NCBI RefSeq assembly: GCF_006345805.1
Contig: NW_021831847.1
Location: 364,999-428,998 of the forward strand
DNA from: Octopus sinensis
Lineage: Eukaryota
Reading direction: 5' to 3'
DNA length: 64,000 bases
The notes beneath the pieces are model-generated. The model saw only the letters and a list, made by a program, of their open reading frames with translations. It was not told the origin of the DNA and ran no database searches. Shown here in pieces: positions 607 to 53,275 of the stretch (positions are counted from its first letter, which is position 1; the number at the start of each line of letters is the position of its first letter). The position numbers and the translations under genes were made by a program.

Positions 607-3048
607 TTATTTCTCAGAAATAATTCGGAGGTAACGAGTGGGGCATAGTAATCCCTGAGGCATGTGACATATTAGGATAACACATTGGCTAACTGACGTT
701 ATACGCCTCTTCACTAAATCGCACTTCCGAACTCCCACTAATCACTCTACCTTCAAAATCAACAAAAATCCCACGATCTAAAATAAAGAAATAAAAATAC
801 TGTTAAACAGAACTAAAAGACACACATTCTTGTCATCCAAACGGTATGTCACAACGTCGTGAGGAATGATAGTCCCCCTCATCTACAACTTACACCACTG
901 ACAGTACCGTGTCCTCAGAAGTGCAAATTGTTGACACGGAATTATTTTTGAAATTAAAAATTTTAAATCCCTTGGAAGATCCATAAACCACTTTCATATT
1001 TTTTTGTGAATCAAAAAATAAATTGACTAAGAGAGGTCGAATCCGAAGTGATTTGAGAGCCTGGAAATGACCACATAGAAGTACCTTATAAGGCATAAAC
1101 ATCGAATGGGGATCCTTATGCCACACATAAATCTCAATGGAAAACCCAACAGCAATGGCCAGGAACACATTCTCATCAATGCTGACTGTTTTAAAACATG
1201 AACAATCCACAAATGTGCAACATATCAATTGTCTGCTCACTGCAGGAGGGCTGTTCTGATTGACCGACTGGAGCATATAGTTCAAAGGAATGCAGTTAAG
1301 ACTGTATATTTTCCGCATTATCATCACCACACAGTTCAGTCCGACTAGCACGTTTATTTGAAACACAGGCTCCTTCATTATTTGAAACACTACCACATCA
1401 AATGACACACATACAGTCCCCGTGTCCTGACTGGTCGAGAAGGAACAGTCCTTGGGATGTCCCCACAAACAGATTCACATCCACCACACACGCACAAAAT
1501 ACCTCCGAGTTGAATTTTATTTTATATTTCCTTATTTCAGGCACTGATTGAGACTTTGGAGAAGACCGTTTCTTCAGAGTGAGGTCAGTTAAAGGATTTT
1601 TAAGTTTAAATTTAATTGTTTTCCGAATGCTATAAAATTATAAAAAGACAAAACTTATCCGAGCGGAATGGGGGACTTTGATGTCTCTTTTTGTGTTTTT
1701 CGACCTTCAAAGTAGAGTCTGTTATGCTAGAGGGAGATTTCATTGTCACATCCACGTGACCGACATATTCTTTCCTCGTATCTGATATTTCTGGGTCCCT
1801 CGGTTTATTGGGGAGGTGAATCATAACTACACATTACTCGCCTTCTCTACCATCAAGACTCCTTCTGGAGTCCTTACGGCACAATTCTTTCATTTGCTTG
1901 ATAGTCTGACTGACTTGTCCACTTTCCAGAGTTATGAAGGGATGGGATATGAGATCACTCGACTTTGGACGGTCTTTAGGGTCCCGATGTAGACACAGCC
2001 TTAAGAAGTCGTGCATCTTGGGAGACCAGGCTTTCTGTCTTCTTAGTTTGGGTGGGGGGATTGTCGGGATGAGAAGAAGAGCCTTCATTGGGTGGTAGTT
2101 GGCCAGTGCTAGGAATGAAGTAGGCAAATATACGAGGCTTTCCTTCTGCCATTTGGATAAGTGTTATTCCCAGAGACCAAATGTCACACTGTTGAGTTAT
2201 TTATTAACTATTAACCCTTCCGTCGTAGGTAGTCTGCTTTTCTGTCTCACAGTTGATCACTTCCGGGGCCATCCTAAGAGTAAATGGGAGATCTGACCAA
2301 TAGGGAGTGCCTATGAATGTATTCCGTCCTCCAATCGACTTGTCCAGGAGGGCACTCACCCCAAAATCGACTAAGAACTAATAGAATTAACGGGTTGCCT
2401 AATTTTATTTCACATCGGTGTGTTATTAGAATATTCTGGCCTTTTATATCTCTGTGGATGATGTTGTTTTGGTGGAGATGTGCCAACCCCTATAAAATAT
2501 AGTGGCACCACGTCAAACGGATAATATTTCCCGCGTAGCAAATGCTATCCAATTTTCAGGCATCATATTAGTTTTTGTAGCTAATTATTAGATTTAATAA
2601 ATAAAATACCCCTTATTATTTTATCTAGAGTGCCCATGCTACAAAATTCCATTACAATCCACAATTCCTCCGTTTTTCCGCGAATTGGCGTACTGACAAA
2701 CGAATTAAAATAGTTGGCTATATTCCGATGGCGGGAAAACTTATATTAAATCAAAAAACTAACTTTTCTCAAAATATCGACCTCAAGTCTGAATGCCTCA
2801 ACGTCATTCTAAGAATAAAATCACATCCCGACTTTCTCCAGTAACATAATCTTGATTGCAGTGAGTTGGCCTGACTTGAGATGTATTGCCTGCAAATTGA
2901 TGGGCTAAGTACCTTCCAGACTGTCCCGTAGGTGCCTTTACCAATTGTTTCAAGGAGTCGGAATTCAGAAGGAGAGCCCTTGTGGATTTTTGGCCAGAAA
3001 ATTTACTTTTAGACTGGAGAGATCGAGTTGCGAGCCTTGACTGAGCAT
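607..3048 (-). CDS. MAP4K4: STE20 GCK-IV kinase (misshapen/MAP4K4/MINK/TNIK): kinase plus CNH domain, about 16 micro-introns; 3' end approximate
   Basis: Hand-spliced: [14 protein letters not shown]|[22 protein letters not shown]|[13 protein letters not shown]...[10 protein letters not shown]...KL|VDFG...GTPYW|MAPEV; CNH start [37 protein letters not shown]; introns 23-30 nt, one GC-AG (2371-2398). Confidence 0.93.
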
Positions 3049-3229
3049 TCTAACACAAACAAATTTATTATGTCCAGATTTAGGCAATTTATTAAACTTT
3101 ATTTTATCATGTTCATAAATTTAAATTTACATAAATTATTTTTTCTCAAAATTCATTTTAATATCACTAATAAAATAAATCAAATAAAAAATGCTTTTTA
3201 ACAATGCTATTTTAAACTATTTCCAAAAT

Positions 3230-5360
3230 CTGTACTGATTTGATCGATCTATTTCCCAATCTAGCATTTCCATATTTACATACTTTTATCTGGAAGTAAC
3301 TAGTCCAGTATGAAGATGAAAATTAAATAAAGATATACTTTGCTTTTCAATACATCGCTTCTTCTATCTTCTAGCACTCCAAGGTATCTGTAACCTTCCA
3401 TCCCATCAAGCAATTTAGCTTCAGAACCAAGGTTTGCCAGATTAGTTGCATACTTTTCGACATTTTTTCTCCGACAGCTTCGAAGAAATTATTTACCTCA
3501 TTCATCATATTCATCATTGTATCTTCTTTTTGTGAAAATATTTTTAGATCATCCATAAACAGTAAGTGATTTGTTGTATATATAATACAACCCTGATCTT
3601 GGTTATCAATCATCACTTTTGGGTACTTAGCATTCAGAATTCTACTAAAAGGATCCATCACCAGGACAAAGATTTGAGGTGACAAGGAATCACCCTGGAG
3701 TATGCCTCTTTCCAATTTTACCTCTCCGATTTCATTATGATTCAGAATTAGCTTTATTCTCCACTTCGTTACATGGTTCTTCACAAAATTCACAATCCAG
3801 CTAGAAAGTCCGGAGTTTTCAAGCACCTGGAACAGAAAGTCGTGATCTACCGAATCGAACGCTTTCTTTGCATCAATCCAGGTAGAAAACAAATTATTTC
3901 CGTTTTGCTTGTGAATGCACCGGTTAAGAATTGCTTGTTCCTTTGCCCCTTGACACATTCGCCAAGTTCCCAATTGATTATCGGCAATCAGATTATATGC
4001 CTTAATATAATCTCCCAACTTCCTGTTAACACATTTCGTTGCAAGTTTATATAAGTTAGACATACAAGTAATTGATCTCAAATCTTTGGGTCCTTGACAA
4101 ATATCTTTCTTTGGGATGAGATATGTGATTCCAGTGTAGAACCACTCATCCGGTGTGTATTCACCATGGATTATCCTGACTAGTTCTTTACAGAAGTGAT
4201 CATGGATTGAGGTAATTTTTTTAGAAAGAAATTATACACCCCATCACAACCGCTAGCTCTCCAGTTTGGGAGTTGTTTAATTATTTCAAAGATGCTTTCC
4301 TTACTAAACTCTGCAAATGTATCCTCTGCCCATGTCACTCTCTTGTTAATTTGTAACACATTATCGCTCTTCTCATTTCTACTCCATATTTTTTTCCAAT
4401 ATGATAGACATTCACTGTTATTAAAGAAACAACGCCGATTCAGTTCAAAGAATTAATTCTGTTTCCGAAATTCTTTTCTTGCATCATGGAGTCGATGTTT
4501 CTTCTCAACAATCTTTATTTCGACTCCAATGCAAGCAGAAATTCTTCCAAGTTCTCCTTTCTTTGCCTTTCGATATCCATATTCACTCAGCGTATCCCTC
4601 GTTGCATTATCGAACTTCAAGCTTCCTTTTTGATAAATAAGTGTATTAGTCTGTTCGTATTGTTCTTTAAGTTTAATTAGTTTTGCTTCCATAATTCCTT
4701 TCCAGTTGTTATTCTTCGTATTTTGTAAGAGCTTGGTATGTCAGCTGTGCAGCATAAACAATATCATTCAAATTGACAGGAGGGTTGGTCTTTATATATT
4801 CATTAATCAATGCATTTATTCTAGACAATATTTCTTTTTTAAGTAGTTGATATGGAACTTTTTTGGCCGGCTTTCGTTTTTTTCGAGAGATAGATTTTAC
4901 TTGCTCTATTTGGGAAAAAAATTCAATTGAGCAATCTCTAAAATTAGAGATTTCAGTTTTGTGATCATTTCTTGATCCATTGGAGAGTTAGACTTTGTTC
5001 CCGTCATCTTAGCCAGACTCTTCACATTCGCCACAGATTTAAACGTGGGGAACTTTTTGTTGAAAGCCTGAGTAATCATAGGGCATCCACCACGTGGTAT
5101 TCTTTTGAATCTTGCTCGAGAAACGTTAACCACTTCATTCGTCCAACTGCGTTACTTGATCGATGATAGCCCGTAGAGTTAACAGATTAGCAAGACAATC
5201 CGGTTGAAAAACCGAATTTGGAGGGGGAATATCAGATTCTTGCGTTCCAAGCTGCCCACGGACCACACGATCTACGTTATTATTGGTTTCTCTTTCATTA
5301 TCCTTCGTAGATAGGTCCATTGGAAATGTTTCATTAAACCCAGTAGAAACAAACATGCAC
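3230..5360 (-). mobile_element. R4/Dong-like non-LTR retrotransposon, frameshifted, 3'-truncated (no RLE seen)
   Basis: RT motifs NQLG..QGAKEQ, WIDAKKAFDSVDH, GILQGDSLSP, NHLLFMDDLKIF; several broken upstream ORFs. Confidence 0.75.
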
Positions 5361-52287: not shown

Positions 52288-52560
52288 TGTAATAAATTAT
52301 TTTAATAATAAAATAATATATTAAAAAAGTAAAATATTTTTTATTTATAAATAATTAATTTGAACCTTTCAATCAATTTCAGAATTGGGGAGCAGATCAA
52401 AGGTTGCTTATGTGAAGGAACGTTACCCTACTTGAGACTGTTCAAAAGTAAAAATAAAAAAAATAATTTTTTCGGTTTCTATATTCAAAAAAGGGTTAAT
52501 AAATTATAAAATGAAAATTTTTAAATATATTTAAATTTACTTTCTTGTTGGTCTTTCCAC
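52288..52560. promoter_or_regulatory. Probable bidirectional promoter (273 bp) between divergent NDUFS3 and AIMP1-like
   Basis: Head-to-head start codons; AT-rich spacer with one GC-richer patch (about 52380-52440); no motif identified. Confidence 0.5.
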
Positions 52561-53275
52561 ATGTCTCAGATTTGTCGAAAAGTGTCCCTACTATTAGAAG
52601 AATTAATACAAATGGAATTTTTAAACGGAAGTATGAATAAAACATCAGTTAATAGAGCGAACATTCCCTCTACCTCGCCAAATCTCAAAATTTTCCGATT
52701 TGACCACAATCGACAATGGCAAAAAACCGGAAAATAAACCACAAAAATGCAAAGATATTTCACTATTCGATATCCGGTACTATCTTTGTTATCAATTTAG
52801 GGTTGGCCGAATTTTGGAAATCCGGGACCACCCTTCAGCCGATAAGTTGTACCACATGATGGTCGATGTGGGTGAGTCCCAGCATCGGTCGATCTGTGCT
52901 GGTCTTCGTCAGAAAATTGAATCTCAGAATCTTTTAGGCCAACTTGGCCTTTTTGTATGTAATTTGAAGCCAATGTCCCTCCGAGGGTTACTTTCTGAAG
53001 GAATGCTGTTGTGTGCTGTCAGTGGGGATTTTGTCCAGCCTCTTGTGCCTCCCAATGACTCGGTGGAGGGGGAACGTGTGGTGTGTGGGGAATATTACAC
53101 CTTTCAGTCTGTCAAACCCAAATACGCTAATTCTGATATGAATATCTACAAGGTGGTTCTGAATGATTTGAGGATTGATGATGAGTCCAGGGCTATGTAT
53201 CAGCAACAACCTCTCACTGTGCCTGGGAAAGGGCAAATTACAGCTCCACTGTTCGTAAATTGTTCAATTTCCTAA
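52561..53275 (+). CDS. AIMP1: tRNA-binding OB-fold protein (AIMP1/p43/EMAP-II, Arc1p-like), 2 introns
   Basis: DISLFDIR|VGRILEIRDHPSADKLY..VDVGE..RSICAGL..CNLKPMSLRGLLSEGMLLCA..PP....GERV. Confidence 0.8.

Follow-up and report, generated by a model that had tools for sequence, protein, structure and literature searches.

Upward jumps from C to G excess on the reference strand, whichever way the genes are oriented, characterize bacterial oriC and human skew N-domains. A strand asymmetry of another kind, a coding-strand excess of G+T, was reportedly found in germline-expressed mammalian genes by Green et al. 2003 and Touchon et al. 2003. In plants and fungi, an excess of C over G at transcription start sites (TSSs) scales with expression (2005, PMC555766), and PMC3315797 cites reports that invertebrate TSSs are C-biased. 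Most unicellular fungi have "opposite GC skews at 5' and 3' ends" of their genes, which were attributed to the phases of transcription (McLean & Tirosh 2011, PMC3315797), a 5'-C/3'-G pattern that the preliminary description of the present locus had missed.

We analyzed a window of 64,000 nucleotides (contig NW_021831847.1) together with eight independent contigs of the same genome. Whole gene spans were scored by an AUC for G lying later than C on the sense strand, without picked windows, in 26 host genes (13 from the window and 13 from the other contigs) whose identities and strands were checked by Pfam. G came later than C in 23 of the 26 (sign test p = 9e-5). The window contributed 12 of 13 genes (AUC 0.53–0.63), the exception being a LIM-homeobox gene with the opposite trend, and the replication set 11 of 13 (p = 0.02; t-test p = 0.01), with a mean AUC weaker off-window (0.536 versus 0.566). 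Non-genic segments, used as the empirical null, had an AUC standard deviation of 0.041, so significance is modest for any individual gene (empirical p from 0.003 to >0.1), and the robust part of the signal is its consistent direction. Chance, or generic compositional heterogeneity inflated by hand-picked windows, is hardly credible as an explanation: AUC excursions do occur in non-genic segments, shrinking many single-gene p-values, and the amplitude is smaller off-window, but the sign matches gene orientation in nearly all genes, replicates on other contigs, and is concordant across introns, four-fold sites and amino-acid usage. The trend is a real bias, seen in most broadly expressed genes of this tiny-intron parasite genome.

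The seven pairs of 60-nt C/G counts given in the preliminary description were all reproduced exactly, as were its PLAA intron counts (7 C/3 G at 32409–32435 and 0 C/10 G at 34022–34047). The sawtooth that it had reported, with resets at short gaps, is visible on the top strand at 500-nt resolution, and within the 49–53.5 kb island the skew resets across gaps of 229–449 bp. Read from left to right, the top strand goes from C to G within every gene because the sense C-rich-then-G-rich rule is strand-symmetric.

One example is PLAA (WD40, PFU and PUL by Pfam; 32284–34667, + strand), whose sequence was also read directly. Its C/A-rich 5' domain (32284–32681, skew −0.28) flips abruptly at about 32682 and the gene is then G/T-rich to the stop codon (+0.26), with a dLL of 18.1 for a step versus 6.4 for a linear trend. 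MIC60/mitofilin follows (Pfam Mitofilin; 34776–36479, +; AUC 0.624, empirical p = 0.004), in which the initial ~300 nt have a neutral or slightly G-rich composition, 400–700 nt is C-rich, the flip lies at about 35507 and the last fifth reaches +0.55; the neutral start is attributable to the end of PLAA just 108 bp upstream. Flips were also located in RPSA, the ribosomal protein SA gene (Pfam Ribosomal_S2; 20827–21679, −; flip ~21134, sense skew −0.04 to +0.43, AUC 0.604, empirical p = 0.013), the branched-chain aminotransferase BCAT (Aminotran_4; 43117–44499, −; flip ~44158, −0.33 in the 5' domain and then +0.09, AUC 0.585), tropomodulin (TMOD, Pfam Tropomodulin; 49055–50199, −; flip ~49696, −0.11 to +0.28, AUC 0.603, empirical p = 0.017), a single-exon bZIP-like gene with a weak Pfam bZIP_2 match (50649–51140, +; flip ~50923, −0.38 to +0.16, AUC 0.627, empirical p = 0.003) and NDUFS3, the complex I 30-kDa subunit (Complex1_30kDa; 51519–52229, −; flip ~51828, −0.23 to +0.21, AUC 0.602). 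A MAP4K-like gene (Pkinase and CNH by Pfam; 607–3120, −) has a weak sense C-to-G step (AUC 0.529, step permutation p = 0.03) with a best change point at about 1506, separating a 5' domain at 1507–3120 from a 3' domain at 607–1506. The gene for a tRNA-binding-domain protein (Pfam tRNA_bind; 52561–53275, +) has the same direction as elsewhere but is non-significant (AUC 0.539). We agree with the preliminary description that the pattern is weak in the cathepsin, Lhx and TTLL genes. Cathepsin L copy 1 (Peptidase_C1; 37378–38499, −) has a moderate C-to-G step at about 38079 (AUC 0.573), and copy 2 (Peptidase_C1; 56395–57569, −; 95% identical to copy 1) a weak one (AUC 0.556). The tubulin tyrosine ligase-like gene (TTLL, Pfam TTL; 53505–55349, +) is essentially flat (AUC 0.534, non-significant), and the LIM-homeobox gene Lhx (Pfam LIM and Homeodomain; 22229–23290, −) is significantly reversed (+0.11 then −0.33), at neutral-like sites too.

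A typical gene is C/A-rich for the first ~0.3–1 kb past the ATG, often flips abruptly, and then has a G/T-rich body that peaks directly ahead of the stop codon, with a G-skew maximum 100–200 nt before it. About 10 genes (length 0.5–2.4 kb) flip 270–550 nt from the ATG, and six further genes do so at 0.7–1.6 kb, three of these six with a non-significant step. Its position is set from the 5' end and not from the gene middle, so the earlier wording of a C-rich 5' half and a G-rich 3' half was an overstatement; so was its extension to every housekeeping gene, as PNO1 is flat. The pooled skew is +0.04 in the upstream flank, −0.06 to −0.12 from the ATG to +400, +0.04 to +0.15 in the body, +0.27/+0.125 in the last 200 nt and about zero past the stop. 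Overall, pooled flanking DNA and spacers have a skew of about zero, the skewed domains are bounded by the ATG and the stop codon, and the pooled flank profile reveals no visible extension into promoters or UTRs.

These boundaries do not suit the replication-origin framing of the preliminary description, and the pattern cannot be taken as evidence of replication units the size of a gene. In favour of each gene forming a separate replicon, amplicon or circle, whose origin would lie at the C-to-G flip and whose termination would lie in the spacers, an upward switch on the reference strand is the textbook sign of an origin, some flips are abrupt, and dicyemids are reported to carry small circles and to remodel somatic DNA. 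We nevertheless regard this as very improbable: the skew halts at the ATG and stop codon and not at a terminus, the flip position is tied to the gene 5' end, gene classes differ in the pattern and young transposable elements (TEs) are flat, somatic remodelling would not be passed on to offspring, and the fungal precedent needs no gene-sized replicons. Moreover, the reported dicyemid circles have lengths of ~600–800 bp (median ~700 bp) and consist of non-coding or mitochondrial-derived sequence rather than of nuclear gene units (PMC6543705).

Recurrent double-strand breaks in the AT-rich spacers, with 5'–3' resection and cytosine deamination on the exposed 3' strands, would make the DNA left of each spacer G/T-rich and the DNA right of it A/C-rich. 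This polarity holds at every spacer irrespective of gene orientation, TA skew varies together with GC skew as deamination predicts, the pooled skew decays from the 3' spacer within about 500 nt, and convergent 3'–3' spacers are strongly skewed too. However, the spacers and flanks themselves have about zero skew, the 5' zone is often most skewed right before the flip and then ends suddenly with no decay, and CLUH is still strongly G-rich 1.4–2.8 kb from its 3' spacer. The flip is also closer to the 5' end than halfway between spacers, cell-type-specific genes and TE ORFs are flat between similar spacers, and fungi have the pattern without such a mechanism being invoked, which makes breakage an improbable cause. 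Gene-centred replication, gene-sized circles and spacer breakage, all candidates in the preliminary description, fit poorly with a flip that is off-centre and a pattern that tracks gene class.

In PLAA, UCH and CLUH, a step outperforms a ramp by >10 log-likelihood units, and the two domains are near mirror images in composition (A.279, C.180, G.227, T.314 on the antisense strand of the 5' domain; A.277, C.161, G.266, T.295 on the sense strand of the 3' domain). Both the mirroring and the abrupt flips, as a fixed internal start site would give, are in line with overlapping sense and antisense transcription in which each gene half is skewed by its dominant direction. With the usual polarity (non-template strand G+T-rich), this would demand divergent transcription from the flip, so that most housekeeping genes would need a bidirectional promoter in their interior, but the flips inspected have no motif, intron or AT-rich gap there, and convergent transcription would require a reversed mutational polarity. 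We therefore consider it unlikely. The convergent sense/antisense mutagenesis suggested earlier comes nearest to our preferred explanation in its transcription-linked asymmetry, though the geometry needed is divergent.

The ~25-nt introns and the four-fold sites carry the strongest gradient, codon positions 1 and 2 the weakest. Pooled AUCs in the window rank introns (0.645, p = 3e-7) above four-fold sites (0.60), codon position 3 (0.58), codon position 1 (0.557) and codon position 2 (0.535), and individual introns give a Spearman rho of 0.44 (p = 2e-4) for the window and of 0.32 (p = 1e-4) overall. In the replication set the gradient is present at codon position 3 (p = 2e-12) and four-fold sites (p = 4e-4), with introns at just p = 0.06. 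Since introns and four-fold sites are the most skewed, amino-acid needs are rejected as the explanation, as had been argued before from introns. At synonymous sites T-versus-A climbs alongside G-versus-C, a keto skew as deamination-type asymmetry would give. The proposal that the bias shapes protein composition holds in part: N-termini are richer in residues with A/C-rich codons, the K/N/T/H/Q/P share falls from 31.7% at the N-terminus to 24.6% at the C-terminus (p = 2e-5; replicated, p = 0.016), and Gly and Val increase towards the C-terminus, but Trp does not.

Among young TE ORFs of the window, a comparison that the preliminary description had proposed, eight of nine were flat and one was marginal (AUC 0.47–0.565). 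The marginal one is an RT ORF (3371–4231, p = 0.047), and those without a gradient include a hAT/GTF2IRD2-like transposase identified by Pfam (27047–28767, −), RT ORFs at 5411–6941, 14756–16901 and 60307–61845, pogo ORFs at 62016–63440 and 28923–29528, and a DDE ORF at 13455–14700. With genes labelled post hoc by the analyst, the mean AUC is 0.574 for housekeeping-type and 0.498 for cell-type-specific families (p = 0.0009), and the pattern is missing from the cell-type-specific Lhx, GPCR, TTLL and ciliary genes. Differences between the cathepsin paralogs are G/A 7 versus C/T 1 in the upstream flank and C/T 5 versus G/A 0 in the downstream flank, a hint in the sequences of mutational asymmetry, whereas the CDS has none (13 versus 13). 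MIC60 and TTLL each have an upstream tandem neighbour whose end is close by (108 and 229 bp, respectively), and in both the C-rich zone is delayed, as though the 3' regime of the neighbour carried over into them.

We consider it probable, at roughly 60%, that the pattern is a strand-asymmetric, transcription-linked compositional bias whose sign is set by position in the transcription unit, and would thus be the animal counterpart of the C-biased 5' and G-biased 3' ends of unicellular fungi. We infer a link to transcription phases and the following lesion and repair steps. In germline-expressed genes, the first ~0.3–1 kb would be an initiation and early-elongation zone, with a mutation/repair regime that enriches sense-strand C and A (net C to T and A to G on the template). 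In the zone of productive elongation and termination, the exposed non-template strand would lose C and gain G/T, with the effect peaking just before the stop as polymerases slow to terminate in a tightly packed genome. Such a mutational bias should be clearest at four-fold sites and in the 25-nt introns, each with ~15 free bases, and would then pull codon positions 1 and 2, and with them the amino-acid content, in the same direction. We know of no mechanism that reverses polarity in the 5' zone. Step-like flips are not obviously predicted by a graded change in polymerase state, and the weaker signal off-window, flat PNO1, reversed Lhx and symmetric cathepsin CDS also count against this reading, as do two departures from fungi, the lack of a visible promoter/UTR extension and an AT skew that is not flat.

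Alternatively, the skew may be selected at the level of transcription or the transcript, which is possible but on balance doubtful. Avoidance of C in 3' regions could tune Pol II flow, A/C-rich 5' RNA could be kept unstructured, or G-rich 3' ends could aid R-loop-assisted termination between genes only 100–450 bp apart. McLean & Tirosh put forward an adaptive alternative for fungi (PMC3315797), and PMC3787257 reportedly connects 3' G-skew, R-loops and termination in gene-dense human neighbourhoods. The G-skew maximum ahead of the stop, the tiny spacers and the stronger pattern in broadly expressed families fit selection, and introns, as part of the pre-mRNA and template, could share it. However, introns and four-fold sites above codon positions 1 and 2 are what mutation pressure predicts, a G-rich domain of up to 2.8 kb (CLUH) is far beyond a terminator's need, altered amino-acid content is costly for a purely regulatory signal, and the paralog flanks hint at mutational asymmetry.

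Compared with known systems, the locus resembles replication-origin switches in its reference-strand C-to-G jump whatever the gene orientation. Origin skew units are 100 kb to Mb in size, whereas those here are 0.5–4 kb, confined to gene bodies, with the flip tied to the gene 5' end and with intergenic and TE DNA free of skew. As in mammals, the sense strand of the 3' domain has G>C and T>A, and the pattern apparently depends on broad, germline-type expression, but mammalian transcript skew keeps one sign throughout and here the sign changes inside the gene. According to Ginno et al. 2013 (PMC3787257), human 3' ends likewise have positive GC skew, notably among closely packed genes, whereas human 5' ends (CpG islands) are G-skewed, opposite to here; R-loops are only a candidate in the present genome. 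The sense C excess near the beginning of transcription units recalls the TSS C-peaks, which are larger in highly expressed genes, but those span about ±100 bp (PMC555766) and the C-rich zone here covers 0.3–1 kb of coding sequence before changing sign. The occurrence in an animal, a dicyemid, is apparently new, and a similar transcription-linked bias was already known from fungi. As in fungi (PMC3315797), the coding strand is C-biased 5' and G-biased 3' with an intermediate body, four-fold sites are biased, N- versus C-terminal amino-acid usage is shifted, the positive skew is maximal near the stop and only some genes are individually significant. In fungi the skew reaches its maximum at the promoter and 5' UTR, AT skew stays flat and all codon positions are similar (PMC3315797), whereas here the skew has no visible promoter/UTR extension, T-versus-A covaries with G-versus-C and unconstrained sites are favoured. 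Relative to fungi, ultra-short introns provide an additional neutral-like read-out and several flips are step-like, and the overall shape is that of the fungal "group one", with a short C-biased start and a G-biased remainder (PMC3315797).

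The window is probably dicyemid DNA, from Dicyema japonicum or a close relative, and its DNA also appears to contaminate the assembly of the host octopus. Its G+C content of 36.7% equals that published for the D. japonicum genome (PMC6736024). Predicted introns in the window genes and in those of seven further contigs (L001-L007) have a median length of 25 nt (IQR 23-26), and D. japonicum and the myxobolid myxozoans are the only animals for which introns this short have been reported (PMC13644364). GC-AG introns are common in the same gene set (19 of 156 predicted introns, 12%), including intron 2 (32630-32655) and intron 3 (32755-32780) of PLAA in the window. 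Subunits of complex I and MICOS are encoded in the window, and Rfam and tRNA scans of its 64 kb gave no matches.

Further contigs were reached via TE protein matches. Small unplaced contigs of GCA_006345805.1 contain relatives of the window's intact hAT-type transposase ORF that are 88-96% identical and bear the label 'Octopus sinensis'. Eight unplaced contigs of this assembly (13-669 kb; L001-L008, in order VCDQ01002078.1, VCDQ01011375.1, VCDQ01001748.1, VCDQ01001066.1, VCDQ01009114.1, VCDQ01002209.1, VCDQ01000828.1 and VCDQ01005081.1) carry TE copies 96-99.6% identical to those of the window, and also bear genes with introns of ~25 nt, i.e., CLUH, BRE1, UCH, PNO1 and others. These contaminant contigs supplied ~158 kb of independent sequence for replication. 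TE ORFs on the parasite contigs are annotated as octopus proteins, e.g., 'GTF2IRD2-like [Octopus sinensis]'. A search with NDUFS3 returned relatives at ≤72% identity only, indicating that host genes of this organism are absent from the index, and two single-exon ORFs of the window had no exact match in the gene-position index.

Several repeated elements lie between the window genes. The hAT/GTF2IRD2-ZBED-like element (26820-28767, minus strand) retains an intact ORF of 483 aa, and the 99.5% identity of its copies elsewhere on other contigs suggests that it was active very recently. A 94-nt tandem repeat (7655-8551; 9.5 copies, 94% matches) also occurs inside an hAT copy on L001 (11994-12990), so this array either moves along with the hAT element or inserts into it. 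Nested transposon remains at 13455-16901 (minus strand), which exon-chaining joined into one chain, comprise a LINE-type reverse transcriptase, a mariner-type DDE_3 and a pogo-type DDE_1. Two GC-rich blocks at 38714-40851 and 57805-60151 (47-50% G+C) are open over long chains in both strands; they resemble 9477-11429, have the look of degraded 3' portions of LINEs, and were left out of all tests. Cathepsin L is duplicated (37378-38499 and 56395-57569), the copies being 95% identical including ~190 bp upstream, and an extra 3'-half fragment directly downstream of copy 1 (~36800-37229) is 96% identical to copy 2.

As windows picked by hand may be misleading, spliced gene models were obtained with an exon-chaining script. 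The identity and strand of every gene were fixed by Pfam, because exon-chaining alone mis-assigns strands where the A/C-rich strand is poor in stop codons, and over-links genes. This placed MAP4K, RPSA, Lhx, both cathepsins, BCAT, TMOD and NDUFS3 on the minus strand and PLAA, MIC60, bZIP, tRNA_bind and TTLL on the plus strand. Two L005 genes with unreliable reading frames entered whole-span tests only. The seven pairs of hand-picked 60-nt C/G counts and the two intron counts of the preliminary description were reproduced exactly, and the top strand shows the rise from C to G in each gene with a reset at each spacer. The sawtooth appears on the top strand in every gene because 'C-rich first, G-rich later' on the sense strand reads alike from either strand.

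Over whole spans and with no window selection, G lies later than C along the sense strand in 12 of the 13 window genes (AUC 0.53-0.63, values above 0.5 placing G later), Lhx being the lone reversed gene, and the TE ORFs of the window are flat in eight of nine cases, the ninth being marginal (p = 0.047). Eleven of the 13 Pfam-verified genes on the eight other contigs run in the same direction (sign test p = 0.02; t-test p = 0.01). Taken singly, CLUH, BRE1, UCH and a WD40 gene show a strong effect there, PNO1 and two ciliary-type genes are flat, and slight reversal is seen in a GPCR and a CDF transporter. Across all genes, 23 of 26 follow the expected direction (sign test p = 9e-5; t-test p = 2e-5). 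An empirical null drawn from non-genic stretches of these sequences has an AUC standard deviation of 0.041, so single-gene Mann-Whitney p-values are too optimistic; the empirical ones span 0.003 to >0.1. What is robust is how consistently the sign follows gene orientation. This consistency and the replication on other contigs exclude pure chance, which is an extremely improbable explanation. Mean AUC is 0.566 in the window and 0.536 off-window, i.e., the window is a somewhat favourable sample, yet the phenomenon is real.

The gradient is present at both intronic and four-fold degenerate sites. Pooled over the window, it is steepest in introns (AUC 0.645, p = 3e-7), followed by four-fold sites (0.60, p = 8e-7) and codon positions 3 (0.58), 1 (0.557) and 2 (0.535). 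With one data point per intron, the window gives a Spearman rho of 0.44 (p = 2e-4). In the replication set the four-fold AUC is 0.561 (p = 4e-4) and the intronic AUC 0.544 (p = 0.06), and third positions reach p = 2e-12. T versus A climbs 5' to 3' together with G versus C at synonymous sites (AUC 0.544 at third positions and 0.567 at four-fold sites in the window; 0.536 at third positions in the replication set, p = 1e-3).

Given the gradient at four-fold sites, protein function does not explain the skew, and protein composition follows it. Residues whose codons start only with A or C (K, N, T, H, Q and P) make up 31.7% of the N-terminal but 24.6% of the C-terminal thirds in the window (p = 2e-5), and 29.9% against 26.0% in the replication set (p = 0.016). 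N-termini are richer in Pro, Thr, Gln and His, and the N/C ratio of Gly is 0.71 in both sets. The earlier suggestion that the bias shapes proteins was thus largely right, Gly and Val climbing toward the C-terminus as proposed, but Trp does not rise.

A division into a C-rich 5' half and a G-rich 3' half was not borne out. Pooled over 23 genes, sense skew is about +0.04 upstream of the ATG, -0.06 to -0.12 in the first 400 nt, +0.04 to +0.15 in the gene body, +0.27 at -200 to -100 before the stop codon and +0.125 in the last 100 nt, and it is ~0 directly 3' of the stop. Flanking values (+0.04 upstream, +0.04 or less downstream) were measured from ATG and stop in spacers of 21-30% GC. For individual genes, a step between two levels is often a better fit than a ramp, with log-likelihood gains (step vs ramp) of 18.1 vs 6.4 in PLAA, 17.0 vs 7.2 in UCH and 28.4 vs 12.4 in CLUH. 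A significant change point was found in 15 of 23 genes, 14 of them C to G, with 5' domain skews of -0.1 to -0.38, and Lhx alone G to C. In Lhx (22229-23290, minus strand) the reversal is significant and includes neutral-like sites. The 3' end of Lhx, which is C-rich, faces RPSA, a strongly skewed gene whose 5' end is 550 bp away.

About ten genes of 0.5-2.4 kb flip at a distance of 270-550 nt from the ATG. In CLUH, BRE1, MIC60, MAP4K, SSF and TTLL the distance is 0.7-1.6 kb, the TTLL step being non-significant, as are those of SEH1 and the reversed CDF at similar distances. Most genes with a significant step flip at 17-46% of their length. The shift between domains is mostly a C-G exchange (C 0.227 to 0.161, G 0.180 to 0.266), with a smaller shift from A to T. 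The flip points coincide with no motif, intron or AT-rich gap. A gene-body methylation boundary was rejected as the cause of the flip, CpG observed/expected being 0.69 vs 0.65 in the two domains. Sense and antisense transcription, taken literally as overlap, would require internal bidirectional starts at the flips; the sequence gives no sign of these, and this explanation is improbable.

These profiles also bear on two further mechanisms put forward in the preliminary description. Recurrent breakage and resection in the spacers, with deamination of single-stranded DNA, predicts the right polarity, the top strand being G-rich to the left and C-rich to the right of every spacer. It also predicts a peak beside the break that decays through any sequence, whereas spacers and flanks show no skew, the end of the 5' zone is abrupt, the flip is nearer the 5' end, CLUH is still G-rich at a distance of 1.4-2.8 kb from the spacer at its 3' end, and TEs and cell-type-specific genes are flat; we consider it quite improbable. 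Break hotspots at promoters only were rejected, since convergent and tandem 3' ends are equally G-rich. The objections to spacer breakage also defeat gene-centred replication or gene-sized circles, which are less credible still. The one-sign skew of a replication origin should persist to the terminus through genic, intergenic and repeat DNA alike, and its switch should ignore gene polarity; instead, skew falls to ~0 outside the ATG-stop interval, TE ORFs are flat and the flip is tied to the distance from the ATG. The circles reported in dicyemids are ~600-800 bp and non-coding or mitochondrial-derived (PMC6543705).

We favour a transcription-linked, mainly mutational asymmetry, to which we assign a probability of roughly 0.6. 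We base this on a direction that follows gene orientation, the confinement of skew to the ATG-stop interval, a flip position set from the 5' end, a 3' domain with the keto polarity of classical transcription-associated asymmetry, flat young TEs, and the difference between housekeeping-type and cell-type-specific families (mean AUC 0.574 vs 0.498, p = 0.0009, with class serving as an expression proxy labelled post hoc). For the sign reversal in the 5' zone, we infer a molecular cause. The C-rich zones of MIC60 (start, 34776-35200) and TTLL (start, 53505-53800) begin ~300-400 nt late, where the upstream tandem gene ends 108 bp and 229 bp away, respectively, as if the neighbour's 3' regime overran the spacer; this small observation, in two cases only, is consistent with a transcription-linked cause. 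A second small observation also fits, the differences between the two cathepsin copies giving a hint of strand asymmetry: G/A outnumbers C/T by 7 to 1 in the flank upstream, and C/T outnumbers G/A by 5 to 0 in the one downstream; the count inside the 3' CDS (13 vs 13) is underpowered.

The skew could also be adaptive, selected for termination, R-loop control, Pol II flow or RNA structure, which we regard as unlikely. The genes hold about six 25-nt introns each, spread along their length, and these near-neutral probes, which the fungal work lacked, make the mutational versus adaptive question testable. Alternatively, a dicyemid-specific germline DNA transaction might write the skew with each expressed gene as the unit, the fungal resemblance then being convergent. 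For example, nicking or breakage would be programmed in the AT-rich spacers, or gene units would be excised or amplified in connection with the reported chromatin elimination, and single-stranded intermediates would be deaminated on opposite strands on the two sides. This reading is quite improbable.

Sign-changing GC skew along transcription units, a poorly understood phenomenon, is extended here from unicellular fungi to an animal. The two dicyemid genome papers do not mention skew, and in our literature searches no skew that changes sign within genes came up for an animal. Long branches and an unstable position in phylogenies are notorious in dicyemids, and a compositional drive that varies with position gives a concrete reason for models to be violated in their alignments. 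Skew polarity can help to orient and delimit genes in this genome, and its analysis brought to light parasite contigs annotated as octopus genes. The skew is a clean animal system with intron probes, not the radical finding initially hoped for.

Among known systems, plants and fungi have C>G skew around the start of transcription (TSS), its strength following expression (PMC555766). In human, G-skewed 3' ends tied to termination are known (PMC3787257). The human-type R-loop skew (Ginno et al.) is positive just past the TSS, whereas here skew is negative over the first ~400 nt; the two share G-skewed 3' ends of closely spaced genes, here +0.27 before the stop with spacers of 108-450 bp. In most unicellular fungi, coding strands have a C bias at the 5' end of genes and a G bias at the 3' end (McLean & Tirosh 2011, PMC3315797), a skew that is also seen at four-fold sites, alters amino-acid usage and is maximal at the stop codon. 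The dicyemid genes share the C-biased 5' end of the coding strand, the G-biased 3' end that is strongest near the stop codon, the skew at four-fold degenerate sites, and N- versus C-terminal amino-acid usage that tracks codon skew. Unlike in fungi, where AT skew is flat, T versus A co-varies along the genes, the skew has no visible extension into the flanks, unconstrained sites hold more of the signal and several flips are step-like. These differences do not take the dicyemid skew out of the fungal kind.
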